Assembly: GCF_006345805.1 (NCBI RefSeq)
Contig: NC_043001.1
Coordinates: 46,996,001-47,060,000, forward strand
Origin: Octopus sinensis
Taxonomy: Eukaryota
DNA length: 64,000 nt
Direction: 5' to 3'
Shown in pieces: positions 20,792 through 43,834 of this stretch. The notes under the pieces are model-generated. The model saw only the letters and a list, made by a program, of their open reading frames with translations. It had not been told where the DNA came from and made no database searches. A program made the translations under genes and the position numbers. Within the stretch, counting starts at the first letter, position 1; every line of letters starts with the position of its first letter.

Positions 20792-21048
20792 TTGGGGAAA
20801 TTAACAACAAACAAGATGAGGACAAATATCCATCAAATGTAAATAATGTACTCCTCACTGTTGTTTACATCAACAATTTGATAATCACCAATATAAGAGA
20901 GAGAAAGAAAAGAAATGTCATTATATTTAAACTGAAATATTTTGGTTCTCACTTCTTGAAAATTGTTTGTTTTCCAGATCATGGAGATCATAGAATTCTG
21001 CTTCTTGGCAATGACTTGTAAGTTATCATTAGGATAATTCTCCCCACC

Positions 21049-21744: not shown

Positions 21745-22730
21745 GGATGGACAGTGTTTAGTCCAAATGGAATTTGCTTTCGGAAAGTAAAAATGTAACA
21801 TTTTTCAAGAAGTAAGGCCATGCTGAAGACAGTGAGGTGTGAAGTGGAATGGCTGACAGAGCAAAAATGATGGGCAACAGAGGTATTTTTATGCAGGCGG
21901 ATGTTTCATAGGTGAACTAGTCGGCTACCTGATGGTCAACATATAAACAATTGCATAGATTGCATCAGATACAGTATATGAGGTTAGATGAAGTGCAGGA
22001 TGAGTTCTGAATGGAGAGGGTATGTTGGTTAGATCCAGTGAGGGAGGGGGTGATGAAATGAAAAGTGTGGCATCAGGGTCTGGAGCAGGGGAAGGAACCA
22101 TGGTGGGTTGGAGTGAGGGGGGGAGAGAACTATGGGCCATTAGGTTACATAGGTTGTGGGTGCATTTGAAGGAGGGTATGAGTGGGTTGGGGAAAATAGG
22201 ATGGGTAGTGGGATCTAGTGGAGATGATGGAAGGCCTGTAAGATCTTCCAACGAAGGGTTAGGGTGGGGGTGGAAAAGAAAAGGAAAAGGGATGTGGTTG
22301 GGAGACTAGTGTGGGGAAGGAGAGATGGTTGTGGAGCAACTGACTTGGCGGGCACAAGTAAGGGCAGCTTGGACAAATGTGGAAAGGTATCCACGATGCA
22401 TAAGCAAGAGAGCCAGGAATTTAGATTGGGTCTTGAAATCCTGGTCACAGCCGCACAGATGTCAAAGACAGAGTAACTGGGAGTAGGGGATGGCCCGTTT
22501 GGTGTGGAAAGGGTGGGAGGAGGAAAGGTTGAGGTAGAGGTGGGAGTCCATGAGTTTGAAGAAGATGAAGGTGAGGGGATCGATAAAGAGAGAGATATCA
22601 AGGAAGTTGACAGAAGTGTTAGAGATGACAAAGCTGAATTCAAGAGCAAGATGGAGGTAGGAGATAAAAGAGATAAAGTTGGAGAGTTGCTCATGGGAGA
22701 GGGAGGTAGAGCTAATGCAGTCATATATAT
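21745..22730 (-). mobile_element. Penelope-like element 3' half (RT C-terminus + GIY-YIG)
   Basis: LDPTTHPIFPNPLIPSFKCTHNLCNLMAHSSL, then SCTSSNLIYCI*CNLCNCLYVD, then SVAHHF..LEKCYIF..PFGLN across frameshifts. Confidence 0.75.
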
Positions 22731-23951
22731 AATGATTGTATAGCTCTGGAGTCAGTTCAGAGAACTGTGAGAAGATATGGGCCTCAATGTAACTGACAAA
22801 TAATTTGGCAAAGTTGGGATATATATAAAAGTTTTTGAAATAGCACTTCTATTATGTTACTATCAATACCATTGAGTCATTTTTCTTTTTTTATTTTTGA
22901 GCTTTTTCATTGTGTGTTCTTTAATTGGTTTAGCTACTATGTTTAAGAGTATACTGGAACACTGCTTGTATGTGTATGAAAAATTAAAAATTGATAAAAC
23001 TCAGTCACTAAAAATCTATAACCTATAGGTGCACATTCAAATACACAGCCCTCTCCCTCCTTTTCTGGTCATCAGCCAATCTTATGTTTTACAATGCCAT
23101 TTTACCTGTCCATTCCTTTATGTTACTCACCCACCATAAAGATGCTCTTCTATCACATGTTGGTCCATACATGGCCATATTCACTAGGACAAAACATATC
23201 TGTTATTCTCATGATTTACTGCTGCAGTGATGTTCACCTCACACTGATTTATATTGTGCTTTTGATGCAACATATCTATGACAGTATTTTCTCTCAGACA
23301 AAATACAAAATCATGCTTTTCAATGGTGCAGATACATTTCACATGATGCACAGATGATGATTTAAATTTAATACTATTTTTATTATGTTTCTTGAGTTTT
23401 TGTAGCTCGGCAAGCTTTCAGCCGTGTATTATTCACTCTTACCCATATATCTTAGCAAGTGACAAATAGATGCATAGCATGGAGGACTATGATGAATAGG
23501 GGTGGACTGAAAACCAAACCCTGGTGAATTCCTAAAATTCATTGCTATACTTGGTGCTAGCTCCCACCTTTCTGAAAGCATCCATTTACATGGTCTATGT
23601 GGATCTCAAAGGCTATTCATCTACTCGTAGCTTCTTCAGTGACCACCAGATTAAAGAACAAAGGATCCTATCCAAGACTTTCTCTAATGTTTAGGAATGC
23701 TAGGTACAACAGCTTACTCCTAACCTACTCCTGAAGATGTTTCACAAAGATGGTATCAATTGTATAGAGGGCAAAAAACCGTGGATGTAGTAAGATTTGA
23801 ACTTAAAACCTTGATTCCAGTGGTTCAGTGTCTCTACATATAATGTATAACTATATCTACAAGTGGCAAATATTTTATTACTTTAACAAAAATTGCATTC
23901 TAGTTTATTAAATGTAAAATCTGAAATCAAAACTGTTTCCTTCTTTTACAG

Positions 23952-23993
23952 ATTTAATAAGCAGAAGTAATAGCTTCGAAATAATTCCAAATG
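23952..23993 (+). CDS. Ig-like gene exon (42 bp, phase 1-1): xLISRSNSFEIIPN-G
   Basis: Acceptor TTCCTTCTTTTACAG, donor G|GTAATC; splices in frame to 31709. Confidence 0.65.
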
Positions 23994-24034
23994 GTAATCT
24001 TTTCAAATCTCTCTTCTATTTTTGTCTCATAGCT

Positions 24035-24123
<89 letters not shown>

Positions 24124-24521
24124 TGAGGGAGAGGGAGATGAAAGAGTAGAAATCAATCTCACCAATATTTCAAATATTTCATTTTCTCTATAGCTGTTTC
24201 TGTTACATGTGAATTATAGCAACTGGAAACAGCTGTAGAAAAATGCAATTTGCGAAATATTGGTAAGACCATTTCTTTTTTATTCTTCCAGTTATTTTGC
24301 TCTAAACATTAGTTTTAGCCAATTTAAAAATTTGAAGGAAAAATCAGATCCAGTTCAGTTAAATATGACTTTTTCCCTATACTATAGCTGCAAAAGTGAA
24401 AAAGATGTATACTAAAACCATTTTCTCTACAAAAGACTCAAAACAATATGCAACTCCTGGTTTTTCTTTGTTCCCATATGTTAATATGAAATTATATATG
24501 CCAAACTCACCTTAAAAATAT

Positions 24522-24683
24522 GTCGGAGTGGCTGTGTAGTAAGAAGCTTGCTTCCCAACCACATGGGTCCGGGTTCAGTTCCACTGCATAGCACCTTGGG
24601 TAAGTGTCTTCTACTACTGCCCTGGGCCAACCAAAGCCTTGTGAATGGATCTGGTAGACAGAAACTGAAAGAAGCCCATCATA

Positions 24684-24746
<63 letters not shown>

Positions 24747-25011
24747 ATACATATATAGGCACAGGAGTGGCTGTGTGGTAAGTAGCTTGCTTATGAACCA
24801 CATGGTTCTGGGTCCAGTCCCACTGCGTGGCACCTTGGGCAAGTGTCTTCTACTATAGTCTCGGGCCAGCCAAAGCCTTGTGATTGGAATTAGTAGATGG
24901 AAACTGAAGGAAACCCGTCGTATATATGTATATCATCATTATCATCATTGTTTAACATCCGTTTTCCATGCTAGCATACCATGCACCAGCCCGCATAGCT
25001 CAGTTGGTAGA

Positions 25012-25081
<70 letters not shown>

Positions 25082-25142
25082 TCATATATATATATATACA
25101 TATATGCATATACATATATGCATATATATATATATACATATA

Positions 25143-25173
<31 letters not shown>

Positions 25174-26100
25174 TACATATATGCATATATATATGCATAT
25201 ATATATAAGGATATATATATATGCATATATGTATATATATATGTATATATCAAATAGATGAACATCTTGTGAAGACCTGTTGAGGCAAGTGAAAATCAAA
25301 ATCAAATCAAATCAAATCAAAACATCAAAATAGATGAACATCAATGGAATTTGTATCTTTGTGGGTACCAGTGCCGGTGGCATACAAGAAAACCATCCGA
25401 ATGTGGCCATAGCCAGTACCGCATCGACTGGCCCTTTGCTGTGGGCACGTAACAAACACCATCCGATCGTGGCCGTTCGCCAGCCTCATCTGGCACCTGT
25501 GTCGGTGGCACATAAAACACCATCCGAGCGTGGCCGTCTGCCAGCCTCGTCTGGCACCTGTGTCGGTGGCACATAAAAAAAAAAAACACCATCCGAGCGT
25601 GGCCGTTCGCCAGCCTCGTCTGGCACCTGTGTCGGTGGCACATAAAATCACCCACTACACTCTCGGAGTGGTTGGCGTTAGGAGGGGCATCCATCTGTAG
25701 AAACACTGCCAGATCTGACTGGCCTGGTGCAGCCTTCGGGCTCCCCAGACCCCAGTTGAACCGTCCAACCCATGCTAGCATGGAAAGCGGACGTTAAATG
25801 ATGATGATGATGATATCATCATCATCATCATTTAGCGTCCGTTTTCCATGCTAGCATGGGTTGGACTGCTAGCATGGGTTATATATATATATATATATAT
25901 GTATTTGTGTGTCTGTGTTTGCCCCTCCACCATTGCTTGACAATCAATATTGGTTTAGTTACATCCCTGTAACTTAGCAGTTTGGCAAAAAAAGATAGAC
26001 AGAATAAGTACTACGCTTACAGAGAATAAGTCTTGGGATTGATTTGTTCGACTAAAGGCAGTGCTCCTTCATAGACACAGTCATAGGACTGAAACGAATA
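24522..26100 (+). mobile_element. Tandem SINE A heads; second SINE split by RTE tails inside its microsatellite
   Basis: Heads at 24522 and 24758; RTE tails at 24932 (-), 25255-25813 (+) and 25814 (-); body 25895-26100. Confidence 0.75.
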
Positions 26101-26289
26101 AAAAAATAGAAGAATACTAATATAATTTCAGTTGAGCTATGATATAAAAATATTTATGGTCTAAAAACATTGCTTCTTTTATTTTTCAAACATAATAAGC
26201 ACAGAACAAAACTATTTTTCTCTTTGTTTTACACAATATTATAAAAGGAAATTTTGACACACTTTCAAATTTCTCACTATAACGTGTGG

Positions 26290-26960
26290 GTCCCTCACAA
26301 ACTCTCAAAAAAGAATTGCTTAGACCAGTTCCTGTTTGTGACATGCTTTTGAAATGGTGTGAAAGCATGCCTTTTTTGAAGCAACTTGTGACTGGAGATG
26401 AAAAATTGATTGTGTACGAAAGCATAGTGTGAAAAAGATCCTGGAGTTTGCATGAGGATCCCCCAAAACAACAACCAAAGATGAATATTCATGCCAAAAA
26501 GGCTATGCTTTGTGTTTGGTGGGATCATAAAGGCATTATTTATTTTGAGCTTCTCCCACAAAACCAGACCATTAATTCTGATGTGTGCTGTCTTCAGCTG
26601 ACTAATTTTAACCAACAAATCAAAGAACTGGAGCTGGAGATTGGCAACAGGAAAGGGGTAGTGTTCCAACAAGATAATGCTCAACCACATGTGTCTTTGG
26701 CTATCCAAACAGAGTTACATGAATTTGGCTGGGATCTCTTACCTGATCTGTCATATTTTCCTAATATTGCGCTATCCGACTACCACTTGCTTTTGTCTCT
26801 ACAGAATTCATTGCAAGGACAAACATTTAACTACTTAGATAATTTTTCTTCTTCAAAACTTGTCAAATTTTAAGCTGATCGAATACTTAGATTGCCTGAT
26901 AAATGGCAAAGGTCATTAATAATAATGAAATTGTATCATTGAATAAAGGGTTTAACATAC
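26290..26960 (+). mobile_element. Mariner (DD34D) transposase remnant
   Basis: LVTGDEK; KKAMLCVWWDHKGIIYFELL; FQQDNAQPH-34 aa-SDYHL. Confidence 0.9.
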
Positions 26961-27800
26961 AAATTTAAGTCAGGCCTAACTTTTACCATAAAACATGACT
27001 TCACCTGTGCTTCGAAGAACTTAATCTATGTTCTTAAATGTGGAGGTTGTGGTGGAGACTACATTGGTCAAACAAGCTTAACTTTGAGGGATAGACTTAT
27101 GGTACACAGGCAACAAATCCAGGACCCCTCAACTAGGAAAATTCCCGTTAGCCAGCACCTAGACCAATGTCCCGTAGATAAAATCCCTAATTACCAAATC
27201 TTCCCTCTCTATCAATGAACTGGAAACACTTCAACCCAATTCTGTTTAAATAAGGAAAACATACTGATTAAAAAATATAAACCACAGCTAAATATCCTTT
27301 AGTAAGAAAAAAAAAAGCAGTATAAAGAAGAGAAAAAATACCCAATTTCAACACAAAAGAACAATAAAATTTTAGTAAAAATCTTCCACCCGGGTTTCGA
27401 AACTCAGCTCCAATTCACCACATAAACATAAGAAGCTGACGTCACCCACCTCCAGTCCAATGAAACTCCACAAACACCAGTTGCTGACGTCACATAATTC
27501 CAAACCAATTGAAACTGAACTTCAACAAATACAACAAAAAGATCCTTTAAGAAAACCAACCAACCGGAATGACCTATAACAGTATCTTGCAAAGAAACCA
27601 ACCAAGCAGAACGACAAGCTTGACCACAGAAGAAAAACATCATCAATTTTTCAACAAATCAAAATCAGATCCACTCACAGAAAAAAATTTATAAATACAT
27701 CTTTCCCTAAAACATACCATTACATGCGGAACTGACTGTTTAAAGATCTGAGAAACCGTAATTTCCCCTTTTTTTACTATTTCAATTCTCATAGTTTTTT
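26960..27800 (+). mobile_element. Penelope-like 3' end: GIY-YIG endonuclease + 3' region
   Basis: ATG-less open frame KHDFTCASKNLIYVLKCGGCGGDYIGQTSLTLRDRLMVHRQQI..PVSQHLDQC, missed by the ORF track. Confidence 0.85.
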
Positions 27801-28096
27801 TTCAGTATGACTTGTCGACCACCACTGAAATTAAAGGACTTTGTACATTCTAACAAATTAATATACAGTTTTAATTTCAAACTTACACCTTCTGTTTTGA
27901 ACATGATAATTTATCAACATTGAAATATTTTAATTTAATTTTGATTTGTCCACATTGAAATTTATAACAATGTTTTTACACTTTTACCATTGATAAACAA
28001 AAAATTGTTGAAACTAGTTTGGTACATATGTAAATAAACGTATTTTAAATATTCATGATTTTTTGAAATTTAAGTGCATTTTCAGCAACACATTTT

Positions 28097-28135
<39 letters not shown>

Positions 28136-28156
28136 TATTTATATAAATACAGTATA

Positions 28157-29021
28157 CAGGGTACGGTGAATAAACTGTCGTCTAAATTGCGCAAAAATGA
28201 AAATAACACTGACATCACTTTTTAACATATATTTATCAAAATTACATAAAAATATCTTGAAATGCTAGAGAGAAAAGTTATTCAATAAACTCACCATTGG
28301 CTTCAACCACGACCTCCAGATGACTTTGGAATCGCCTGCAACTCTTCTGGACTGTCTCCTTGTTCAAGTTGGTGAATGCTGCCATTATCCTTGTTTTCAG
28401 TTCATTTTTGGTGTTACAAGGAATTTTGTTTGTCTCTTGCTCAACTGTGCCCCACACATAATAATGAAGGAGGTTGCAGTCTGGGGAGTCAGGTGGCCAG
28501 ATGTTAGGGGTGATGTGGTTGTAGAAATTGTCTGACAGCCATGACTGGGTTCTCTTGCTTGTATGGCATGATGCAGAGTTCTCTTGCCAAACACAGCATC
28601 TTCCAACAGCCATCCTCATGACCCAGGGCAGCATAACCTCTTCCAGGCATTTGATGTAGGCCTCTGTGTTGAGTCTGAAGCTTTGTGGGAAGGTGAATGG
28701 AAACATAATGTCGACATTACTAGTAATCACTTCAAGCATCATGATGTTAACTAGATGTTTGATTTTCATCACTCTCAGTACATGTTCTCAGATTGACACC
28801 CAAAGGCTCTAAAATGTTTGTATTGGAGGTTCTGGTGCAAATGCCAAGCAGTATAGCATGTCATTTCCAAATTTCTGGCAGAGTGAATTGCGTCACGGTG
28901 CTGTTTTTCTCACAGATGGTGTCTAACTGACTCTACTATACTGTTGAGAAAATTAAAAACAAACAATGCACATGCACAAAATTGAAAATATAAAATGGTA
29001 CAATTTACCCCTTGCATCTTG
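28157..29021 (-). mobile_element. Internally deleted maT-like (DD37D spacing) Tc1/mariner element
   Basis: WQENSASCH-37 aa-LLHYYVW (both catalytic Asp mutated); WPPDSPDCN; degenerate TIRs with TA on both sides. Confidence 0.85.
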
Positions 29022-29025
29022 TATA

Positions 29026-29074
<49 letters not shown>

Positions 29075-29284
29075 TATTACATACATACACACATGTACAA
29101 ATCACAAATCCTTTCAAGTAGACGGCCCTGCTTAATCTATAGGAAAGACGTTAGAAACTCCATAAGAGGTACCCAGTGCAAGCTATGGAAACATAAGAGG
29201 TGCAGCAATATCAAAGAAAGGTTATCTTAGAAAATAGTTTTTGTGCGTGTAAGGTGCACAAGTACAATAAACACCAAAGATGTA

Positions 29285-29600
29285 CAGAAAATGGACTCAA
29301 TCAACTGTCAGTGGAATAAGCTGGAGGTAGTTCCATTATCTAGTTCCATTATCTAGGCTGGAGGTAGTTCCATTATCTAGGTTCCATTATCTAGGTGACC
29401 AAGTTAGTAGTGGAGGTGGATGTTCTGAGAGCATAGCTGCAAGAATAAGAATAGGCTGGACAAAGTTCAGAGAGCACCTATAGTAACAAAGGGCCTCTCC
29501 CTCAGAGTGAAAGGCAGACTGTATGATGCCTGTGTGTGCTACACATCAGTGAAACATGGGTTCTGACAGCCAAGAAAATGTGTAAGCTCCAGATGGGGAC
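29285..29600 (+). mobile_element. RTE family A RT fragment
   Basis: GDQVSSGGGCSESIAARIRIGWTKFRE..VTKGLSLRVKGRLYDAC. Confidence 0.8.
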
Positions 29601-30250
29601 GAGGCATTTTTCTACCGCCTTGTTGTTCACAGACATAATTCTTTTTTCCTTCTGGCTATATATTTTATAGACTACTGTTCTGGTAGTTACGTTCTGTAAC
29701 ATATCCTGTGGTGGCAACGGTTTAGTTTCATTTTCACTTTTTTTAATGAGGTTTCTAAACTTAAATAGTTGTTCCTTTGACATCTCCAATTCACAAAAAT
29801 TACCACCAACGGCAGCAGAGAAACTGGGCTTTTCCTTTTCTTCCTGGTTACCAACTTGGTTACTTTCTTTCATTGCCAGGAAATCCTCATTTGAGAACAG
29901 AAATTCAACATTCAAAAGCAAATTTGATTCCATTTTAACAAATGGCCTCCAAACTCCACAAGAAAAAGCGTAAATATTTTTGTCAAAAATGATAAAAATC
30001 AATTTTTATCTTGCAATGGATATCAAACAGTCCAAAATGTTGTGCAAAAAACAATTTTCCACCCTGTAAGGTGAAAATTTTCATCAAAACGATGACAACA
30101 GTTCAATTTCAACTCAAACGCGACAATTTCAACAGATAAATCAACAACAAAAATACATTAACAAAATAAACTCCCTGAGCAACAGCAGCCTAATGTAGAA
30201 GAGTGACAATCCTGGTTATTGATGGGAAGTGGTTTCCAATACAAATATAT
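29600..30250 (-). mobile_element. Possible L1/Tx1-type ORF1 5' fragment
   Basis: EKPSFSAAVGG..RTVVYKIY resembles a LINE ORF1 N-terminus; weak. Confidence 0.3.
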
Positions 30251-30348
30251 ATACTTTTTCCAGTGACGAAAAGTCACTGATCTCGTAAAAGTGGAAACAA
30301 GCAATAATAAATCTCTGACCAAGGTATAAACAGTAGCAGCACGACATC

Positions 30349-30564
30349 GTGAAGTATATTTGCCACCTAAATGTGGCTAACCCTTAAGGTCTATGTGTAT
30401 CACGTCAGGCTGGAGATGGGAACAATGACTTCTCCTTGCAAATACTGATAGGACACAGACAGTGTGTCAATAACCAGCTGGGGGAGATGTCTTCTTGGGG
30501 CTACAAGCTACTGTAGCATCGACCCTTAAGGGTTAGCCACATTTAGGTGGCAAATATACTTCAC
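30349..30564. mobile_element. 216-bp MITE with perfect 41-bp TIRs
   Basis: GTGAAGTATATTTGCCACCTAAATGTGGCTAACCCTTAAGG (30349-30389) equals the reverse complement of 30524-30564. Confidence 0.85.
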
Positions 30565-30634
30565 TATATATATATGTGTGTATGTATGTATATATATATA
30601 TATATGTGTGTGTGTGTATGTATGTATAATACAT

Positions 30635-30945
30635 ATAGTGGCTGTGTAATAAGAAGCTTGCTTCCCAACCACATAGTTCCTGGTTCAGTTCCACTGCATG
30701 ACACCTTGGGCCGACCAAAGCCTTGTGATTAGATTTGTTAGATTTGGCAGACAGAAATTGAGTGAAGCCTGTCATGTGTGTGTGTGTGTGTGTGTGTGTC
30801 TGTCTCTTCACCACTAGATAACTGGTGTTGATGTGTTTATGTCCCCATAACCTAGTGGTTATATAATAAGTACCAAGTTTTAAGAAAAAGGTATAGGGTC
30901 AATTTGTTCAACTAAAACCCCTCAAAGCAGTGGCCCAGCACTTTG
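30635..30945 (+). mobile_element. SINE family A
   Basis: Head, (TG)n and body in order. Confidence 0.75.
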
Positions 30946-31708
30946 GTTAACCTAGAATTGTGTAGTGATGTTGCATACACTCACAGGCTCCAACCAACTC
31001 CAGCTTGGACTGCATCCCTGTGCAGGATGCTGCTGACTCTGAGGATATAGTGCTCATCATTACTAGAGTAGGGTATTGCCATGTGACCTATACTTAGTCA
31101 CTCTTCACCTTGTCTGCTTCATTTCACTGACACCCATGGTGTCATCTAACTTAAATCTTGGTCCATCTGTCCACCATGAAAATGTATGTGGACATTCCAA
31201 GTGCTTACGTTTGTGTTATTTTTGGCATTAAAACACAGCTAATTGGTGTTCAACTTTCATGCAGCTTTGACCTGGTTTCATCCAAAAATGAACCTTCTCC
31301 TCTTTGCTTAACTAGTCCACAATAGCTGCTTTTTGTAATTTCTGTAGTGATAAGTTGGTTTTACAAGGGCAGGTGTAAATAGTTTATGCCAAATTTTGTT
31401 CTAATAGTTTAGGTCACATTCTGTTATTTCTGATTAAATACTGTCTAATTAAGATATGTCTGGTTGAGTTATATTTCAGCACATACTATCTTATTGCTTT
31501 ATATTTCATTAGATCATATCTCATTAAATTAGGTCTAATTAGCTCATATCAGTTTTATTTTGTTCTCCTGTTTTGCTTCTCATTATTTTTATGATTATTA
31601 TTACAAGTTTATTGTCAATTTCCATGATAAAAATAATAAAGCCAAAAAAAAAAACCATAAAACAATGATATAAAGAAGCAATTGGTAATGTTGATTTATT
31701 TATTTCAG

Positions 31709-31957
31709 GAACAGCTTGGTTAGGTGAAAGCATCGCTCTTAGTACTTCAGAAATTCCAGATATGAAAAGACCTATAGTCTGGCGAAGCAAAAATTATAAA
31801 TATGAATGTGATAGGACATGTGCCAGTGGAGAATATACAGTTACTCAGGATGGTAATACTTCAACTCTTACAATCAAAAGCATATCTTGGGAATTCTCAA
31901 AGTGGTCTTTTACGGACGATAACTTAAATGGTGCAAAACTTGAACTGGACATAAAAG
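31709..31957 (+). CDS. Ig-like gene exon (249 bp, phase 1-1): atypical V-type Ig domain
   Basis: TTTATTTCAG|...ATAAAAG|GTAAGG. Open frame GTAWLGESIALSTSEIPDMKRPIVWRSKNYKYECDRTCASGEYTVTQDGNTSTLTIKSISWEFSKWSFTDDNLNGAKLELDIK. Confidence 0.85.
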
Positions 31958-32090
31958 GTAAGGAAATTATTTCTGTTGATAATAATAATCATGGAGCAAG
32001 TATTTTATAATATCAAAGCAAAAATCAAAGTTTCTAATTTATCTATTTCAAGGTTTTCTTTGGTATAGCTAATTTCTTTTCCCCATAATA

Positions 32091-33271
32091 TGAGGTCCAG
32101 CTGAAAAGTTCATAAGCTGACCAAGATACTCTCATGGAACGTGACCAAATGAGATTTTTCAACTTAGCCCCCTTGCAGGCTACACATTTCTTCCATTGGT
32201 GTTGCAGTGCTTGAATCCCATTGGTGAAAAAGCTTTCATCCTATTGGTAAAAAAGTAAAAAGTAAAAAATACTAGATATGACATCATCGTCACTGCAATT
32301 CTAGCTCCCAGCCATGTGGTTTTCATGTTGAGGAACAGATAATTAGTCACATGAGGTTGAATAAGGAGAACAGGGAAGCTGATCAACCTGTTCAAAGCCA
32401 AATACACTCACAGCAGCCATTAAAACCAAAGACTTGTGTGCTGGAGCATTGTCTTGATGAAACGAGACCCTGCATAATACTTTCTATTGATGGTGTAGCT
32501 CTTCTGATGCCTTTTGCATCCCCCATAACTGAGATCATCACCTTCCCTGCAGATGAAACAACCTTGGCCTTCTTTGGTGCAGGCTAGGAGGGAGTGTTTC
32601 CACTACATGGTTTATCCCTTTGTCTCTGGCTCAAAATGTTGAACTTGATACTCATCCTGGGTTGGGAGATTTTCAAGAAAACCAGCTGGATCTGCCCCAA
32701 ACAATGTCAGATTTTCCTGTGATGTAATCAGCATGGTGAATTTTTGATCAGGTGTCAGATGTGGCACTCACCAAGCAGAAACATTCACCATGCCAAGTTC
32801 ATAGTGCAGAATATTCTGAACCCTCTCACAGGATATGGCAATAGCAATGGCTATTTGATTTATACTCAATTACCTGTCATCTATCACCATGAAGTGAACA
32901 TGATCAATGTTTTCCTTGCTGGTGGCAGTTGCAGGGCTTCCAGACATTGGGTCATCTTCAGAACTCTCCCTTCCCCTCCTAAATTCAGCTGCCCTGTTCT
33001 TTTTGTACTGTTGATAAAGTTGGAGTATCATTCCCTAATGTAGCAACCATGTCAGCATGAATGCTCTTGTGGGCTAAACCCTTCTTGATAACACCATGAT
33101 GCAATATTCTGTCCATTTTCAAGAGGAGTTGCTACTAGTCACATTTAAATCTTCTTTGAATAGTTATATTTCAGTTACGTGGAAAGAAACAATGTGGTTA
33201 TTAATAAGAAGTGTTGAAATTAATGCATCACATCTTCATAGTCAACCTATGAACTTTTCAGCCCACCCTTG
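32091..33271 (-). mobile_element. Full-length decayed mariner (1181 bp) with TA TSD
   Basis: TIRs TGAGGTCCAGCTGAAAAGTTCATAAGCTGAC / GTCAACCTATGAACTTTTCAGCCCACCCTTG with TA on both sides; FHQDNAPAHKS on minus strand. Confidence 0.9.
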
Positions 33272-34049
33272 TATCTCTTGTTGGATACTTAACCAAATGA
33301 ATTAGTTTAATTGTTCTATTATCTTTCTAATATCCTGGCCATGTTTCAGTGGTCACCAGTCTAAGTTACTACTTAATTTCTATACAAATGTTTGACAATT
33401 TCTGGTATCATATTTGTGACAAAAAAAAAAAAAAAAAATTTGAATAGTATCAGAAATACCAATGCACCACTGTCTATGTAGCCCAATGAAATCCTCCAGG
33501 TACAAACAAGAATTTAAGACCAGCTGTTCATGTAAACTCCTTTATAATGATGATTTAGTCCTTATAGCAAGTAAGTAGAAGATTTAGAGAATAAATTCCA
33601 GAGATGGAGACAAGAACTAGAATCAAGAGGTGCTAAGTTTACAGTATCACTGTAAACTTAGCTGTTTTTTTTTCTTTCTATTATTAAACTTACAATGTTG
33701 CTTAAGGACTGTAGGTTGCAACCCCTGATAGCCTTGCTCTAGACATTTTAGGCACAGACCCTTATCCAGTATTTACTCTGAAGCCCTCAGGCAATAATAT
33801 CTGACATGGATCCATGAGTGAGTAGGACCTAAGGATTTTGTTCACCGCTGATAGTTGTTGTTGACAAACAACGGCAGTAATTTTAATCAGCTGAATACAC
33901 GTCATTGATTGGTTGAAATTACTGAAATACGACAACTTTAACATGAAATAACTTTGAAAATATAAACTTTTCTCAACAACACTAAGAGTAAAAGATGTTT
34001 TATATGACACATTCTACCAGTGTCCGAAGTTTGAAAGTGTTTAGTTACA

Positions 34050-35106
34050 AAAAATTAATTTCTCGATCAGCTAATCTATCCTTCATGGGTTTGTGGCAGG
34101 CATCCTCTTCTCCTCTGCCATTATATAAGTCTTTCTTGGCATCTTCCAAAAAAGTCCTGTCTCATCACAGTTGAAGACTTGCTTGGGGATATTTCCTTCA
34201 GCTGCTATAATTCCGGCAAAAGTGCCTTCATATCTGCGCTCATTGCCTCACTATGCCTGACAAGGGAGTGAATGCCAGTCCTCTTTTTAAAATTCTCGAA
34301 CCAGCCCTGACTGACTTTAAATGGCTCACCTTATGCCTCATCCAAACCAATGCCTGGGGTCTGCTGCAGCAAATCAGTGTAAATAGCTCGTGCCTTCTCG
34401 CAGATTATAGTCTCCGTCATGGTATCTCCTATCAGCTGTTTCTCTGTCAACCACACCATCAGTAGCTTCTCCATATTTTCATGGATAGGTATCTGCTGTT
34501 TAGAAATTATTTTAATGCCTTTGGTTCCTTCTGCTTCAGTATGGTGCACATTATAGAAGTGCTATGCTCATACTGCTTTGCCAAGTTGACTATACACATC
34601 ATCATGGTCATCTCTTTTGATAATTTCTCTCTTCAATTCAATGCACATCATCCAATTCTTCTTGGCACTGTCCTTTGCATTCACTTTCTTTCGACTTGTG
34701 ATTGGAAAAATGAAGTTTTGCAAAATAACTGCAAGCAAAATTGCAAGCATAACACTGATGCTTCTGTACCCTGCAATGACTAAGTAAGCATTTTATCACC
34801 TGTCCAGCTAACATTCCACTAACAATCTTCACACTTGCTAACACACACGTCTGTCTAGTTATCCATCTACTAATGAGCTTTGTACTTGCTAACATGAATG
34901 TTTGTCCAGCTATCGAGTGAGACACAGAATGCTGAGCAGATGTTAGAGCATTCACTGTGGCATTCGCTATGCCAACTAGCAATGGGGTATCTGAAAATGG
35001 CTCATAACCCGAATTTTAGCTCACAACTCAAAGCAAAAATTCGGCCGAGAGACAGCTTGTATCTCAAAAATCTCATTAGTTAGAACACTTGTAAGTCAAG
35101 GTACCA

Positions 35107-35110
<4 letters not shown>
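34050..35110 (-). mobile_element. Tigger/pogo transposase 5' remnant
   Basis: KKVNAKDSAKK..IELKREII; HENMEKLLMVWLTEKQLIGDTMTETIICEKARAIY (CENP-B-type HTH). Confidence 0.85.
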
Positions 35111-35149
<39 letters not shown>

Positions 35150-35309
35150 CACACACATACATATGATCATACATACACACACACATGCACAGGATACGTC
35201 AGCTTTTTGAAGTTATTTTTTATGCATTGAGAAAAAGGTGCAAAGGTCATCAAAGAAAAGCTACCTTTGGTCTCTAAGTCAAAAGACAAATGTTCTACTA
35301 CATTCAGCA

Positions 35310-38300
35310 TCATCATCATCATCGTTTAACGTCCGTTCTCCATGCTAGCATGGGTTGGACGGTTCGACCGGGGATCTGGGAAGCCAGAAGGCTGCCCCAG
35401 GCTCCGGTCTTATCTGGCAATGTTTCTACAGCTAGATGCCCTTCCTAACGCCAACCACTCCGTGAGTGTAGTGGGTGCTTTTTACGTGCCACCTGCACTG
35501 GAGCCAGGCAAGGCTGGCATCGGCCACGGTCGGATTGGTGCATTTTATGTGCCACCTGCACGGAAGCCAGTCGAGGCGGCACTGGCTTCGGCCACGATTC
35601 GGATGGTGCTTTTTACGTGTCACCGACACGGAAGCCAGTCGAGGCGGTGCTGGTATCAGCCACGATTCCGATAGTGCTTTTTACGTATCTCCAGTCCAGG
35701 GGTCCTGGCATCTGCCAGTTGCCAGTCATAGGATTGGTTCAATTTCGATTCCGATTTCGATTTCACTTGCCCCAACAGGTCTTTGTGTGTCCAAGGGAGG
35801 AAAGGCATGCATAAGGTGCCTGTCGTCGGATGAGGTTCGATATCGACTTCGCTTGCCTCAACAGGTCTTTGTGTGTCCAAGGGAGGAAAGGCATGCATAA
35901 GTGAGCTGGACTCACTTGTCCTGCCTGGTCATTTCACACACAGCATATTTCCAAAGGTCTCGGTCACAGGTCATTTCCTCAGTGAGACCTAAAGTTCGAA
36001 GGTCGTGCTTCACCACCTCGTCCCAAGTTTTCCTGGGTCTACCTCTTCCACGGATTCCCTCCACTGCTAGGGATTGGCACTTTTTCACACACCTATCTTC
36101 ATCCATTCTCGCCACATGACCATACCAGCGCAATCGTCTCTCTTGCACACCACAACTGATGCTCCTTAAGTCCAACATTTCTCTCAGGGTACTAACGCTC
36201 TGTCGAGCATGCACACTGACATTACACATCCATCAGAGCATACTGGCTTCATTTCTCGCAAGCTTACGCATGTCCTCAGCAGTCACGGCCCATGTTTCAC
36301 TGCCATGTAGCATGGCTGTTCGTACACATGCATCATACAGTCTGCCTTTTACTCTGAGCGAGAGGCCTTTAGTCACCAGCAGAGGTAAGAGCTCCCTAAA
36401 CTTTGCCCAGGCTATTCTTACTCTAGCCGTTACACTTTCAGCACACCCACCCCCACTACTGACTTGGTCACCAAGATAACGGAAGCTATCAACTACTTCT
36501 AGTTTTTCCCCCTGGAAAGTGATGAAAGTTGTTTTCTGCAGATTTTCAGAGGTTAATGCTCCCGAGCATCTGCTACATACAAAAACTATCTTCCCAGTTA
36601 GCCTTCCTTTGACATTGCTGCACCTCTTATGTGTCCATAGCTTACACTGGGTACATCTTATAGAGTTTCTACCTACACCTTTTCTACAGATCAAGCAGGG
36701 CCATCTTCCTGAAGACATTTGTGGATTGTCTACCTTCCTACTTATTAGTACTTTGGTTTTAGCTAGGTTAACTCTAAGGCCCCTCGATTCTAGACCCTCC
36801 TTCCACACCTGGAACTTCTCCTCCAGTTCTGATAGTGACTCAGCAATTAGAGCAAGGTCATCAGCATATAGGAGCTCCCAGGGGCAACCTGTCTTGAATT
36901 CCTCCGTAATTGCCTGGAGGACTATGATAAATAGGAGGGGGCTGAGTACTGAACACTGGTGGACCCCAGCCTCTACTTTGAATTCTTCTGTGTACATGTT
37001 GCCAACCCTAACCTTACTTACGGCATCCCTGTACATGGCTTGCACAGCCCTCACCAGCCATTCATCTATCCCTAGTTTCCTCATTAACCACCAGATAAGG
37101 GATCAGGGGACCCTGTCAAAGGCTTTCTCCATGTCAACGAAAGCCAGGTACAGGGGCTTATCTTCGGCTAGGTATTTCTCCTGCAGCTGTCTCACCAGAA
37201 ATATGGCATCAGTGGTGCTTTTCCCTGGCATGAAACCAAACTGCATCTCGTCCAAGTTGACTCTCTCCCTAATCAGTTGGGCTATGACCCTCTCTGTAAC
37301 CTTCATTACCTGATCCAACAGCTTGATACCTCTGTACTTATTTGTATCTAGGGCGTCTCCTTTACCTTTGTAGCAGTTGACTAGTATGCTGCTACACCAG
37401 TCATTGGGTATGACTCCTTCGTGTATCACCTGGTTAACTATACTGGTGACTAGGTTATAGCCAACACTGCCAGATATTTTGAGCATCTCTGTAGTAATTT
37501 CTGATGGACCTGGGGCTTTCCCTATCTTCATGCTTCTAATTGCTTTAACTATCAAAGAATTATCAACTTGGATGGCTGGTCCCTCTGTTGGGTTGACATT
37601 TGGCAGACTCTCTTTATCCCATTCATTTTCTTTATTCAGCAACCTTTCATAGTGGCATTTCCAAACCTCTCTCTTTGCATCCTCATTTAATGCAAGTGAA
37701 CCATCATCCATGCGGACACATTTCTTTCCTACCACATCACGATTCTCTCTCACACTGTCTTGCAACACGAAACACCTCAAGTCTTTCATCCTCACGGCGC
37801 AGAACATTGGCAAATTTTTTCTTATCCGCTTCCCCTCTGGCTAAATACACCTGTCTCCTAGCTTCCCTTCTGGCTGTCTGATACAATTCCCTGCTACCAC
37901 CGTTCTTCCAGTCCCTCCAAGCCTGTTTCTTTTGTCTAATAGCCCTGTCAACCACATTGTTCCACCACCACGTTACTCTGGGTCGAGATGGGACTTTGCT
38001 CCATCCACAGATCTGGTCAGTGGCTGTCAGCAGATTGTCCCGTAGAAATCTCCAGTTGTCTTCCACATTAAGTGAAGCTATATCCCCTTCTATTTCATCA
38101 AAGGCTTCGAGTAGTATGTCTCTAAATCTCTGTCCATTTGCAGGATCTTTAAGCTTCCAGACCCTTCTCCTCCAAGCTGGTCTTCTTCTGGGCAACCATT
38201 TAGCTCTGATCCTGATGTCGCTAACTACTAATCTATGTTGAGGAGTACATTCTTCGCCTGGAAAGGTTTTGGCATTTATAAGCAGCCCTCTTTCCCTCTT

Positions 38301-38720
38301 TCTGGCGAGGATGTAGTCAATCTGACTAGTGTGTCTACCAGAACAGTAGGTGACTAGGTGAGAGGTGGGTTTCCTGAAGTTGGTATTGCAAACCATAAGG
38401 TGATTTGCATCGCAGAAGTCCAGCAGCCTGGTTCCCTCCTCATTTCGAGAGCCAAAACCATAGCCTCCATGAACGCCATGGAAGCCCCCGACATGCCGTC
38501 CAACATGTCCATTGAAATCACCTGCCACAAAGAGAAGGTCACTGTCATTTGTCAACGAGGTAGTCCGCTATAGGGTGTCGTAGAATTGGTCTTTCTGTCC
38601 TTCCAGTAGCCCTGGTTGAGGGGCATATGCCGAGATGATGGTAGCTGACCTATGGTGAAGCACTAATCTAATCTTAAGTACTCTATCACTTACTCTGACT
38701 ACCTCGATTACCTTATCTTC
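35310..38720 (-). mobile_element. RTE-clade LINE family A, 5'-truncated, frameshifted (APE + RT + PHD + 3' UTR + (GAT)n)
   Basis: GDFNGHVG and SQIDYIL (APE); DMEKAFDRVP, GVHQCSVLSPLLF and YADD (RT); RGRGRPRKTW; tandem ~60-bp 3' UTR repeats. Confidence 0.95.
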
Positions 38721-38795
38721 TTATGAAGAAGAATTTATAAGTGTGGGATGGTTGCCTATACTCACATGTAATCATATTTGTGACATATTTTACAG

Positions 38796-38896
38796 TGAAA
38801 CCAAAGTTGGAGATCAAGGTAATAAGAAATTGTATATACAATGTAACAGCACAATGTTCTTTACCTGCGACACGTATAGAATGTTACCTTAGAAAG
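38796..38896 (+). CDS. Ig-like gene exon (101 bp, phase 1-0): VKPKLEIKVIRNCIYNVTAQCSLPATRIECYLRK
   Basis: TTTTACAG|TG...AAG|GTAAGT, a perfect donor; frame continuous with neighbouring exons. Confidence 0.85.
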
Positions 38897-39893
38897 GTAA
38901 GTAAACAGAATTCTTTTTATCTGTGTTTATCTTTGTACCATTAACCTACTCAACTTTGGGGTAAGGAGTGGAATATTTATATTAGACAAACAATTTGGAA
39001 CAAGCATAATTATGTGCCTTGGTCAGGAGCACAGCACAAGGACTTCAGTAAAATTTGAACTGATGGACTATGTGGTCACTTGTCTAGCTACTACTTTACT
39101 ACACAATCATTGTTTTTGATTCTGGATTCCTTTTTAACTATTGTAATCATATTGGATTGCAGTCTTTGGGTGTAATAACATCTATAATTCCATCTGTATT
39201 TCTCTAGGACTTGAGCCTTATATAAGTTTTAGAATTTTTTATTTCTACTCCAATATTTCTTGATCCTTAAAAGGAAACAGTTTTAGTGATGCAGTCTTGG
39301 TTATCTGGTATTTGTAGAAACTACAATGAGAGGTTCTAAGAGACGGTATAACCTAAAATTCATAGAGAATGTGCAAAAGCTTAATTGTGTGTTGTTTAGG
39401 AATGGTAAGGATGTTGTGTGTGTTTCCTTGATTTGTGTCATGTTTTTCAGTATAGTGGAATAAAACTAAAATGTCAAACTCAAATTTCAGAATATCTCCA
39501 AGTCCTTTTAGTTAATGAAAGATATACTTTGACAAAGTCAACAAATTTTGTGTGATAACACTTAGTTGCAGAAGATGGTTTCTGGAATAAAAGTGTTGTA
39601 TATTTAGAACTGTGTTCAATGCTTGTTCTATCAACTTCTCTTATACTATATCAGCGAAGAACTTATTCATAATATCAAGTAAGTCATCCATGTAGGTCTT
39701 TCATGTGCCATAGTTAGTTCTGGTTACTTGTTAGAGTATCCTAATAATATTGTATCAAATAATTATGTTAATAAGTCAAGAAATTTAATTAGAAATGAAT
39801 AGAGAAATGAATGTGATAGAATAAAAGTGTACTTCCTGATGCTTTTTAATTATCTTCTCTCTCGTTCTCTCTAACCATCTCTCTCTCTCTCTG

Positions 39894-39945
<52 letters not shown>

Positions 39946-39967
39946 GCTTTTCTTTTTTTCCTCTCAG

Positions 39968-40130
39968 ATTCCTACTGAATTTATTGCAATCCAAAGAAAT
40001 ACATGTCCTGATGGGAAAACTGTCACCAATGATGTTATACTAAATGTTAGTTCTTCAGCTACTGGAAAAGTGGAATGTATTTTCACTATGAAAGATTTAT
40101 TCAAGGAGAAACGATTTATAGACTTTCAAT
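39968..40130 (+). CDS. Ig-like gene exon (163 bp, phase 0-1): IPTEFIAIQRNTCPDGKTVTNDVILNVSSSATGKVECIFTMKDLFKEKRFIDFQ
   Basis: Long polypyrimidine tract ending CTCTCAG; donor T|GTAAGG; open frame. Confidence 0.85.
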
Positions 40131-40585
40131 GTAAGGGAGTATTTTCATAATGTTTATAAATTATATTGAAAATTGTGTTTAATTTTTTAATGCTTAAATA
40201 TATTGACTGTAAACTTTTTGTATCATTCCCAACTTCCTTAAAATATATTTTGTGTGTTATTTCATAATTAATATATTTATTGTAAATTGGATGATCCTGA
40301 TATTAGTGTCACTCATAATGTGCTTTTATGTCTACTGCTATAAACACTATTAAATCTTCCTTAAAAGAATCATATTAAAATGATCTGCGATCTCATTTAA
40401 ATACTTGTAAGGATCTGTTACTCTCTAAAAATTAAGGGTCTAATACTCTCTGTATATTAAGGAGCTGTTAGTTCTCAAATATTAAGGATCTGTTACTCTT
40501 CAAATATCAAATATATATTACTCTCAAAATATTATGGAACTCTGTTATTCTGTAAATATTAAAGATCTACTAGTCTCTTTATATT

Positions 40586-40800
40586 GGTTTCACATTTTGG
40601 CACAAGGCCAGTAATTTTTGGGCAGGGGTGAATCAATTACATCGCGCCCAGTACTCAGCTGGTTCTTATTTTGCCAACCCTGAGAGAATGAAAGGCAAAG
40701 TTGACCATAGCAGCATTTGAACTCAATATGTAAAGACAGACAAAATGCTGTTAAACATTTTGCCTGGCATGCTAATGATTCTGCCAGTTCACCACCTTTG
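40586..40800 (-). mobile_element. SINE family B with 16-bp TSD
   Basis: CTAGTCTCTTTATATT (40570-40585) / CTACTCTCTTTATATT (40801-40816). Confidence 0.8.
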
Positions 40801-40904
40801 CTACTCTCTTTATATTATGAAATTGTTACTCTCTAAATAATAAGGCTTAATAACTCTCCAAATATTAAGGAACCTTAAATATTTGGGAGCTGTCGTTGCC
40901 GTCA

Positions 40905-41300
40905 TCGTCGTTGTCGTCATCATCATCATCATTTAACATCCGTTTTCCACGCTAGCATGGGTTGGACGGTTTGACCGGGGTCTGGAAGCCATGGAGGCTG
41001 CACCAGGCTCTAGTCTGATTTGGCAGTGTTTCTACAGCTGGATGCCCTTCCTAACACCAACCACTCCGTGAGTGTAGTGGGTGTTTTCTTTGTGCCACTG
41101 GCACAGGGGCCAGAGTAGGCTGGCAAACGGCCATGATCGGTTGGTGCTTTTACGTGTCACCAACACGGATGCCAGCCAGGCGGCGCTGGCATCTGCCATG
41201 TTTGGACGGTGCTTTTTATGTGTCACTGGCACGGGTGTCTTAACTACAATTTCCATTTGAATTTTTATTTTGATGTTGATGTACTTGACTCAATAGGTCT
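40905..41300 (-). mobile_element. RTE family A 3' UTR/tail
   Basis: Same terminus and internal repeats as 35310-35910. Confidence 0.85.
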
Positions 41301-42701
41301 CCTCTTTAAATATTAAAATTTGTGTATCATGAAACTATTACTTCCTAAATATCAAGAAACTGTTAATTCTTAATGATCTATTACTCTCTAAATATTAAGG
41401 AATTGTTAACTCACTAAGTATTAAAGATTCATTAGCTTCTAAATACTTAGGTGATGATAAACTCTATAATTAATGTTACATCAATTCCAAAATTATTTGT
41501 CATTTCCAAGCATGAAAAGCTGAGATAATATTTTTGTTATTTATTGGATCTGGGTTATCACCTTTGGAATGATTTATGTATGTTAGGAGATAAGAAAAAA
41601 GACATTTGTCATCTTTTTGTGCTTATAGGACAGCAATGTACATCATGGTCATTGAAACATATGTAGTAAGGTGCTTTAGATATGACAAGAATTAAAATAG
41701 TAGAAGTGATACTTGTACCATTGGCAATTAAATATGGAATCTAGAGCAGATTTATGTTTCCATGAGCAGTTGTGAATAGAAACTTTGAATGGTAGTAGAA
41801 GTAATTACTATGCTCCATCTACAATAAGAAAGTTAATTGGCTTAAATATCACTTAGTTCTCTATAATATACTTTTAGAGCCAGCAAAGAAGCACCAGTGT
41901 AATCACTGATTAGAAATACCTCCTATCACATCCTGACATCTTAAAAATGAAGGGTGATATCAGATAATATTATCCTAGATATACACTCTTCTGTTATGGT
42001 AATTTACTAGTTGTTTATACCAGCCATTTCCTATAGACCTCTATCACACAGGTACCATAACTTTCTACATCCCTCTATTTCATTTGCTATCTATCAAGTG
42101 TAATCTACCATAGCTAGCCATGATACTTTTCACTATCCTCTACTCATTAACCATGTACCCGCTGTAGTCTACCATAATCTATACTGCAAACCTCTACCTT
42201 GTGACCACCTACTGACTCTACTCTATCATTGCTCCTTACCATGATACTTTTTCATATCCCTCAACCTCATTAGTCTACCAAAATCATCTTCTAATAGGCT
42301 TCTACCATAGGACTTCTAATATCACTACAACAACACCTGTTCATTATAACTTGTAGTCGAAAAGCTACACTTAAATAAACCATTCATTTTATATCTAAAC
42401 ACTATTCTCAACACATTGCCCAATCATTTCTCCCATAAATTCAACAACATGAAACTCCACATTTCTGTATTTTCCACTCAGTCACTAAACTGAGTCAACA
42501 TGATTGTATCCAAAGATCCAAATTAATCTATAACTTCATCCAATTAACCCTATTCCTGAGTCCAGAAGTAAAAATTTTATAAACAGTACGTTTCTTCAGA
42601 CTAAATAAAACTCATTTGGCTAATTCGAACCTCTTAAATTACACAAATATACTTATTTTTAATAAATACTAAGTTATGTATTATATTGATTATCTTTGTA
42701 G

Positions 42702-42820
42702 GTGCTGCTTCACCAGGAGTAAAAACTGATGATGATACTGACTCAGGGTTTTACATATTCAGACCATGCACAAACCTTCTCCTGGGAATCATAATTGCTC
42801 TAATCATATTCAAGAATTAA
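42702..42820 (+). CDS. Ig-like gene last coding exon: CAASPGVKTDDDTDSGFYIFRPCTNLLLGIIIALIIFKN*, GPI-signal-like
   Basis: TATCTTTGTAG acceptor, phase 1; polar spacer then terminal hydrophobic stretch with no cytoplasmic tail. Confidence 0.8.
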
Positions 42821-42936: not shown

Positions 42937-43834
42937 AATATATATAAATATATATAGATCATCATCATTGTTTAATATCCGTTTTCCATGGTGGCATGGG
43001 TTGGACGGTCTGATCAGGGACTGGCAAGCCAGGAGGCCACACCAGGCTCCAATCAGATCTTGCAGTGTTTCTACAGCTGGATGCTCTTCCCATCGCCAAC
43101 CACTCTGAGAGTGTAGCGGATGCTTTATTTATATATAGATATAGATATATATATTGTTAGAAAATATATATTCTGAGATCAATCTCCCTTGTGAACTTCT
43201 GCTGTTTTGTCTTGAATTACCAGTGTTGATTTAGATGTAAACCACTCAGACATGTTAAGAATTATCTAATTCTGGTTAACATAGATATCCAAATTTGAAG
43301 TTATTTCTGAGATGAGATTAGAGGTAAAGGTAGAGTCTGGTGAAAAAAAATTACATTGATGTCCAAATGACAAATGTTTTGCCTTAGGAATAATACCAAG
43401 TAATAAGAAAGGAAGCAAGGTGTCAAGTTCACATAACATGGAGAGTAACTGCACTCAGGAGATTTGCCAATGCTCTGTAATGAGAGGATCAGAATTCTGA
43501 GATGTTCTATAATGTGAAACAGTATATCTCATGGGAGGTGGGGGTGGGGAACTGTATTTGAAATAACAGATGTATACTTATTTTCACTGCCACTAAGAAC
43601 AAAGAGGCTTGGAAATATGAAAAGTTCCTGAATGTCAAAAAATGTGTAGGGCAGGTGGGGAGAGGAACTACAATAAAGCATCCAGCTATATCAAGCAGGT
43701 GGATAAAAAGGCAGTACTTGGATTCGAACACTGCTAAGCAATCACTCTATATAGTAAAATGTTCTGAAAATATCTACTCTCCACAATCACAACACATGTC
43801 AGATTATTGATGATGATCATGATAGTCATGATGA

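Follow-up and report, generated by a model that had tools for sequence, protein, structure and literature searches.

Among vertebrate proteins, CD2, CD48 and CD58 combine a distal V-type immunoglobulin (Ig) domain that lacks the core disulphide with a proximal C2-type domain carrying extra disulphides, and some of them, CD48 and one CD58 isoform, are held at the membrane by a glycosylphosphatidylinositol (GPI) anchor. The Dpr and DIP proteins of Drosophila are likewise small, Ig-only surface proteins, often GPI-anchored and expanded within their lineage, which act in cell-cell recognition. In cephalopods, lineage-specific expansions of recognition molecules such as the protocadherins are known, and the immune recognition repertoire is poorly understood. 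The gene considered here, LOC118763661, lies on the plus strand of a 64,000-nucleotide stretch of the Octopus sinensis genome (contig NC_043001.1, positions 46,996,001 to 47,060,000; the whole stretch is called the window, and coordinates are window positions throughout). It very probably encodes, in seven coding exons, a secretory protein with two Ig domains that belongs to an octopod-restricted modular family, and for which GPI anchoring and binding at the cell surface are putative properties. As a gene model the locus adds nothing to the public record; what is new is the assignment of a fold and a family to a protein that is listed everywhere as uncharacterised and carries no Pfam domain, together with the pattern of its divergence, the exons of the mature protein diverging at two to three times the rate of the introns beside them.

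The identity of the gene follows from two exact correspondences. Window positions 7437-52820, about 45 kb, are 100% identical to CM016863.1:47003437-47048820 of assembly GCA_006345805.1, and translation from the ATG at 20981 gives the last 236 residues of the O. sinensis protein XP_036359298.1 (236/236 identical); the locus is therefore part of annotated LOC118763661, whose coding range corresponds to 17437-42820 (about 47.01-47.04 Mb of CM016863.1) and comprises seven coding exons. The five exons that a first-pass annotation of the raw DNA had joined into a hidden gene are coding exons 3-7 of this real and annotated gene, which RefSeq already lists and which is thus not hidden. XP_036359298.1 (254 aa) bears the RefSeq label "uncharacterized protein" and is a member of the 90% cluster of P0001. 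Annotations of the gene exist in three Octopus species, and the orthologous loci are colinear across O. sinensis, O. vulgaris and O. bimaculoides. All sources call it "uncharacterized" or "hypothetical" and no characterised name was found, as the first-pass annotation had anticipated when it recognised no named gene; the literature searched yielded no paper mentioning the LOC numbers or accessions, and nothing relevant on expansions of the Ig superfamily in octopus. The coding exons are as follows.

17437 to 17487, plus strand: coding exon 1 of RefSeq LOC118763661, MGDTTRKIRTMTQVVYQ, an N-terminal extension before the signal-peptide core.
20978 to 21017, plus strand: coding exon 2; the ATG at 20981 opens MEIIEFCFLAMT, the hydrophobic core of the predicted signal peptide; phase-1 donor T/gtaagt (here and below a slash in a donor marks the splice site).
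23952 to 23993, plus strand: coding exon 3, (Y)LISRSNS/FEIIPN(G), the predicted signal-peptide end and, after the slash, the mature start; phase 1-1.
31709 to 31957, plus strand: coding exon 4, the entire domain 1 in 249 nt; symmetric phase 1-1.
38796 to 38896, plus strand: coding exon 5, encoding predicted strands A-C, which form the first half of domain 2, with the sequon NVT and three Cys that are invariant; phase 1-0.
39968 to 40130, plus strand: coding exon 6, encoding predicted strands D-G, the remaining half of domain 2, and two of its invariant Cys; phase 0-1.
42702 to 42820, plus strand: coding exon 7, an acidic polar stalk AASPGVKTDDDTDSG, FYIFRPCTN, a 12-residue hydrophobic run LLLGIIIALIIF, KN and the stop; phase 1-stop.
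13106 to 13153, plus strand: alternative 5' coding exon MENMIDLYASDIASGK, located by tblastn of P0001, with a phase 0 end and a gtaaaa donor.

Exons 3-7 measure 42, 249, 101, 163 and 119 nt and are bounded by GT-AG splice sites, with each AG acceptor behind a pyrimidine tract and with the donors of exons 3-6 reading G/gtaatc, AAG/gtaagg, AAG/gtaagt and AAT/gtaagg. Their joining without a stop (223 full codons plus a split first codon), in the phases 1-1, 1-1, 1-0, 0-1 and 1-stop that the first-pass annotation had given, was reproduced exactly, and the junctions are those of the RefSeq protein; a reading of splice sites and phases in raw sequence had thus recovered five annotated exons to the exact base. 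The multi-exon gene was real, but the model was truncated at its 5' side, where it missed two coding exons (17437-17487 and 20978-21017) that supply the start codon and the greater part of the signal peptide. Since the window, which is AT-rich and transposon-rich, contains 40 open reading frames (ORFs) of at least 110 aa, an open frame of such length is not significant by itself. At the orthologous O. bimaculoides locus, a seven-exon GT-AG chain at colinear positions is the only solution that reproduces XP_014779944.1, and at the O. vulgaris locus the compared coding exons carry three substitutions, none of which falls on a splice dinucleotide.

The start codon is ambiguous, the protein being of 254 aa if read from 17437 or of 236 aa from the ATG at 20981, and the choice of first exon differs between models: RefSeq uses 17437-17487 in O. 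sinensis and the O. vulgaris model uses the counterpart of 13106-13153. The latter exon is the first exon of CAI9722445.1 and is 100% identical to the O. vulgaris locus. The former differs at 1 of 51 nt from isoform X1 of O. bimaculoides, and it lies in a segment of about 1.1 kb (~17250-18357) to which nothing in the O. vulgaris assembly was aligned (~14210 of that locus). Exon 2 is identical to that of O. bimaculoides at 40/40 nt.

The assignment of the protein to the Ig superfamily is carried by its predicted structure. With a 38-row family alignment, AlphaFold2 gave a model with a mean predicted local distance difference test score (pLDDT) of 95.1, a predicted template modelling (TM) score (pTM) of 0.79 and no segment below 50, consisting of two all-beta domains of 8 and 7 strands. 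Foldseek comparison of this model with the PDB returned 1068 Ig-superfamily matches at E<=1e-3, headed by bovine butyrophilin, CD200R/CD200RLa, BTN3A1/BTN2A1, antibody light chains and NCAM2, and the two-domain receptors among these aligned with TM scores of 0.55-0.64, the range for butyrophilin/B7-type and CD200R-type ectodomains as a whole being 0.52-0.66. By the predicted model, both domains are of the Ig superfamily at the level of fold, domain 1 being a membrane-distal V/I-type domain and domain 2 a membrane-proximal C-type domain; at the level of sequence they are below the Pfam Ig thresholds, and domain 1 is without the canonical disulphide, so that the protein is a highly divergent member of the superfamily. 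The first-pass annotation had described both domains as Ig-like, the first without the canonical Cys pair and with a CxxxC motif, the second with six Cys, and had suggested structure prediction and fold comparison as a means of checking the Ig fold; the description agrees with all of these results, and its motifs WLGESIAL, IVW and STLTIKSI were located at 31717, 31774 and 31861.

In domain 1 there is no Cys in predicted strand B (IALST) or F (KWSFT), a feature that holds family-wide, while the core Trp stands in predicted strand C (IVWRS), at alignment position W30, which is kept in at least 90% of the copies. The conserved CxxxC directly follows predicted strand C', and the sequons NGT and NTS are found in exon 4. 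The six Cys of domain 2 fall in predicted strands B (AQC), C (IEC) and F (VEC), before B, after D and after G; the codon of the sixth is split, with its first base in exon 6 and its last two bases in exon 7. All six are invariant in the closest subfamily. In the model the B and F residues fit the canonical disulphide pair, and the first and sixth are suggested to pair because both are lost together in one paralog; the domain probably contains three disulphides. It has no Trp, and a conserved Phe (L-x-F-T) follows the strand-C Cys.

Searched with the full model, the protein databases returned six proteins, all from Octopus. They include P0001, the O. vulgaris "hypothetical predicted protein" of 253 aa (99% identity, 100% coverage); the O. 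bimaculoides ortholog LOC106876057 (66% identity by BLASTP, 69% in a MAFFT alignment); LOC115211991 of O. sinensis (59% identity); and, from O. bimaculoides, LOC106876058 and two isoforms of LOC106876065. A HMMER profile built from six relatives and searched against 1.84 billion representatives found 35 proteins, 30 of them at E<=1e-10. The real matches that carry a species name come from O. sinensis, O. vulgaris, O. bimaculoides and Argonauta hians only, and a few others come from sequencing-run assemblies; the two weakest long matches, P0043 and P0044, were set aside as repeat-driven noise, being bacterial Big_13 and InlB-B-repeat proteins. The proposal of a lineage-specific family, already made by the first-pass annotation, is in line with this distribution, and the family appears to be restricted to octopods, to the extent that squid and cuttlefish proteomes are covered by the library.

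Two modules make up the family. The domain-1 module of about 90 residues is present in 1-5 copies per protein (34 distinct copies were aligned) and the domain-2 module of about 88 residues in 0-2 copies; the window protein gives significant hidden Markov model matches to both. The domain-1 consensus reads ..VLG...TL.I.IPNMKRPVVW.C.NYKYECDRTC.....YKVTQ.GN.STLWI..VT.EC.TW.F.D.N......I.L.I, with an almost invariant Trp and an invariant CxxxC. Most paralogs have an additional Cys pair (W-x-C and E-C-x-T-W), both of which are lost in LOC118763661 and its closest relatives. The octopod paralogs (LOC115211991, LOC106876058, LOC106876065, LOC115225115/6 and others) resemble LOC118763661 in the shared modules and in a signal peptide split over two exons; most of them differ in having 2-5 tandem domain-1 copies, the extra Cys pair, and transmembrane and cytoplasmic regions, and many are on other chromosomes. 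Their C-termini vary from short hydrophobic tails to true transmembrane segments with cytoplasmic tails, multi-pass regions and soluble ends: Argonauta P0019 has a true transmembrane segment and a basic tail, isoform X4 of LOC115211991 (P0009) is a soluble form, and P0038 and P0040 have multi-pass regions.

No paralog was found inside the 64-kb window by tblastn of the model and its relatives. In O. bimaculoides, LOC106876065, which consists of domain 2 and the same last (tail) exon as LOC118763661 with no domain 1, lies tail-to-tail directly downstream of the ortholog on the minus strand (~36155-38724 of that locus); within the 21 kb that follow the gene in the O. sinensis window, no counterpart of it was found. 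A word-indexed protein search with the 83-residue domain 1 as query returned nothing even though XP_036359298.1 holds the exact sequence, so that short queries in this search can be false negatives. On a separate O. sinensis contig of 21.3 Mb, LOC115225115 and LOC115225116 have 2-5 tandem domain-1 copies and annotated isoforms numbered at least to X16, and these many isoforms fit cassette splicing of symmetric phase 1-1 domain-1 exons. Read through, the intron after the domain-1 exon (31958-32010) encodes GKEIISVDNNN..., and the C-termini of P0024, P0031 and P0042 are near-identical to it (GKEITSANNNNNNSF); the duplication of the domain-1 exon has therefore taken in the intron that flanks it, and some of the deposited models result from reading through an intron. 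In P0033 (305 aa), C2H2 zinc fingers are fused in frame to a domain-1 module, probably through an annotation merger of neighbouring genes; in the window, too, a zinc-finger gene is the direct upstream neighbour of the Ig-like gene.

The divergence of the gene was measured between O. sinensis and O. bimaculoides, with the intron level taken from ten alignable flanks of 240-300 nt, in which 6.2% of sites differ (170/2742). Exons 1-3 differ at 3% of sites, and the signal-peptide region shows one change in 111 nt. Exons 4, 5, 6 and 7 differ by 13.7, 17.8, 21.4 and 20.2%, each significantly above the introns (p 7e-5 to 2e-9), and exon 6, the most diverged, also has a 3-codon indel. Pairwise ratios of nonsynonymous to synonymous substitution (dN/dS, Nei-Gojobori), which come from small counts, are 1.06 over the whole protein and, by region, 0.40 (domain 1), 2.49 (domain 2) and 1.97 (tail). 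The nonsynonymous divergence of domain 2, 0.229, is 3.7x the intron level (p = 3e-13), and between the paralogs LOC115211991 and LOC106876058 the dN/dS of domain 2 is 1.36.

Two O. bimaculoides paralogs separated by 265 kb, LOC106876057 and LOC106876058, demonstrate gene conversion in the domain-1 exon: over its 3' 174 nt they differ by 1 base (22593-22766 of the LOC106876057 locus against 14202-14375 of the LOC106876058 locus), whereas its 5' 75 nt show 15 differences and follow orthology. This conversion also accounts for the inflated synonymous distance of domain 1. In exon 5, ...CFIGK is common to all three O. bimaculoides paralogs and ...CYL(R/G)K to both O. sinensis paralogs, which hints at further concerted evolution. 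In exon 6 positive selection is the likelier cause, because no sharing between paralogs is seen there and the synonymous distance is near the intron level. Taken together, an almost frozen set of signal-peptide exons and a fast mature protein point to diversifying selection, gene conversion between paralogs or both, a pattern to be expected of a molecule in co-evolution with its partner.

The topology of the protein can be outlined from its hydrophobic segments. The 254-aa protein has only two, at residues ~18-34 and 241-252. The first contains the core FCFLAMTYLI and is followed by S-N-S, with small residues at -3 and -1 of the predicted signal-peptide end in exon 3; this is a heuristic reading, and the paralogs have typical signal peptides. 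Four N-x-S/T sequons are spread across the two domains. The second segment is a run of 12 residues that ends two residues before the C-terminus, leaving no cytoplasmic tail, and it is too short for a membrane helix. The order of elements, a candidate cleavage site at D229-S-G, a 9-residue spacer, LLLGIIIALIIF and KN, recalls the usual GPI signal, in which small residues, a spacer of ~9 residues and a terminal hydrophobic run occupy about 25 residues in all. A putative GPI anchor is accordingly placed first among the readings of this C-terminus, with a confidence somewhat better than even.

The alternative that fares best retains the same gene and fold and dispenses with GPI: the C-terminal peptide would anchor the protein weakly in the membrane, leaving two residues as a cytoplasmic tail, or else the protein would leave the cell by secretion or shedding. 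This is a tentative possibility to be taken seriously, as the O. bimaculoides ortholog does not share the candidate omega site, family members display every kind of C-terminal end and the tail evolves fast, with a dN/dS about 2; against it, a hydrophobic run of 12 residues (8 residues in O. bimaculoides) does not have the length needed to span the bilayer stably, and the layout of the C-terminus matches the general GPI-signal pattern.

It is considerably less probable, and indeed very unlikely, that the two domains adopt another beta-sandwich fold (FN3, cadherin-like or bacterial-Ig-like) in place of that of the Ig superfamily. Such a fold would agree with the lack of a significant Pfam Ig match for the window protein, with the missing B-F disulphide of domain 1 and with the domain-2 profile, which had no Ig match in the PDB, where it reached only Pf12 and NXF1 at E about 0.3. 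The best Foldseek matches, however, are all V-C Ig ectodomains, and domain 1 has sub-threshold similarity to I-set, Ig_3, titin, myotilin and CD2. Of the 11 PDB matches of the domain-1 profile, the best 9 are Ig domains (titin, myotilin, CD2, obscurin and CD79b; E 0.05-1), and when single copies of the module were compared with Pfam, I-set (6/34) and Ig_3 (4/34) were the families most often touched, all below threshold. The four-repeat paralog P0014 scores 23.6 bits against an I-set cutoff of 23.7, and some multi-repeat paralogs have a precomputed match to PF07679 (I-set). Domain 2 gives almost no signal by sequence, with one C2-set_3 match among 13 copies compared with Pfam. The symmetric phase 1-1 of the domain-1 exon, which is typical of exons that encode Ig domains, and the Trp in predicted strand C also argue for the Ig superfamily. 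Matches to DurB-like, GvpD and designed kelch proteins in the single-protein Pfam and PDB searches were rejected as noise.

That the exons are a chance chain of open frames, or a decaying pseudogene carried between species by annotation pipelines, is hardly credible: frames as long as this one abound in the window, some of the O. vulgaris annotation may derive from projection, the overall dN/dS is about 1 and exact-product look-ups gave no transcript contig, whereas the frame and all GT-AG sites are intact in O. sinensis and O. bimaculoides, the splice dinucleotides are unchanged in O. vulgaris, the six domain-2 Cys and the CxxxC are invariant amid changing residues, conservation is far higher in the signal-peptide exons than in the introns, relaxed constraint alone cannot raise exon divergence above the intron level, and the predicted fold is a confident one of two Ig domains.

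The reading of LOC118763661 as a secretory, two-Ig-domain surface protein has several points weighing against it. The window protein has no Pfam Ig match even at E<=10, and a single-sequence search of the PDB returned no Ig domain and only a chance match to a designed repeat protein; as single-protein searches gave no Ig match, the assignment rests on a predicted, not a solved, structure. AlphaFold2 run with six close relatives reached a pLDDT of only 41.7, and that model was not used. The O. bimaculoides ortholog has P-S-G in place of D-S-G, and its hydrophobic run is of 8 residues and is interrupted by D-N. Exact-product look-ups found genome contigs only. As to selection, the dN/dS values are pairwise and based on small counts, domain 2 has 5.5 synonymous and 45.5 nonsynonymous changes (Fisher test of nonsynonymous against synonymous, p=0.06), and some of the excess divergence may have a cause other than positive selection, owing to conversion in the domain-1 exon and, as is suggested, in exon 5. 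The function of the protein is entirely inferred, as are GPI anchoring, surface location, binding and biological role.

With LOC118763661 taken as such a secretory two-Ig-domain protein, a possible course of events can be proposed. The signal peptide would direct the protein into the secretory pathway, where N-glycosylation would take place, and the last ~25 residues would most likely be removed with transfer to a GPI anchor. The product would be a two-Ig recognition or adhesion molecule at the cell surface, standing on a short acidic stalk and binding a partner through the distal domain 1, by analogy with the butyrophilin/B7, CD200R and CD2 families. Co-evolution with this partner could follow; as partner one may think of a pathogen, a protein of gametes or a further surface protein of octopus cells. 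A broader proposal, which must be regarded as unlikely, is that octopods invented a family of Pfam-invisible Ig-like receptors that works as a diversified recognition system, through a mature protein that changes fast behind a frozen signal peptide, gene conversion between paralogs and domain-1 exon cassettes, and that serves immune recognition or self or partner recognition in skin, suckers or neurons. Given the known expansions of recognition molecules in cephalopods, and how little is understood of the immune recognition repertoire of these animals, it is reasonable to see in an Ig family that evolves fast and is tethered to the membrane a candidate for studies of expression and binding.

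The surroundings of the gene are rich in repeats. The GC content of the window varies from about 32 to 47% across 2-kb windows, and microsatellites and transposon ORFs are many. The introns, which the first-pass annotation had described as filled with transposable elements, contain the following.

26448 to 26873, plus strand: remnant of a mariner-type transposase in intron 3 (Pfam Transposase_1, E=1.3e-22).
36233 to 38555, minus strand: ORFs of a retrotransposon of the long interspersed nuclear element (LINE) type in intron 4, with reverse transcriptase and a PHD finger (Pfam RVT_1, E=1e-13 and 1e-10).

The intronic LINE copy has long open reverse transcriptase ORFs and is found at the same site in O. 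vulgaris with 99% identity, and a second copy of this LINE family, about 87% identical to it, is found at 62592-64000 on the minus strand. Copies of a tRNA-like short interspersed nuclear element are present at about 25341-25781, 35342-35900, 41032-41260 and 42965-43116. About 8.6 kb upstream of exon 17437 lies a single-exon C2H2 zinc-finger gene (7018-8832, plus strand) with a 604-codon ORF and more than 12 fingers by Pfam; gene calls of 590 and 589 aa exist for it in the O. sinensis and O. vulgaris loci, respectively.

In comparison with known systems, the closest counterparts of LOC118763661 are CAI9722445.1 of O. vulgaris and LOC106876057 of O. bimaculoides, which have the same exon structure, the O. 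vulgaris model differing in its first exon. Beyond octopods, the best structural matches are the ectodomains of butyrophilin/B7 proteins and CD200R (Foldseek E 5.6e-9 to 1e-7), in which a V-like distal domain is likewise followed by a C-like proximal one; identity in the structural alignments is 12-18%, and no homology to them was found by HMMER. Butyrophilins and CD200R further differ from the octopus protein in being transmembrane proteins with cytoplasmic domains and in retaining the canonical disulphide of the V domain. The likeness to the CD2 family and to Dpr/DIP proteins that the first-pass annotation had drawn holds only as an analogy of architecture, and no sequence homology to these families was detected. 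CD2 is among the weak profile matches of domain 1 (E 0.46-0.72, non-significant), no significant sequence homology to CD2, CD48, CD58 or SLAM was detected, and CD2 is absent from the top 50 Foldseek matches. The vertebrate CD2-SLAM proteins have neither the CxxxC loop seen in domain 1 nor six Cys arranged as in domain 2. The arthropod Dpr and DIP proteins, to which no homology was detected, have canonical, Pfam-recognised Ig domains with core disulphides, unlike those of LOC118763661.

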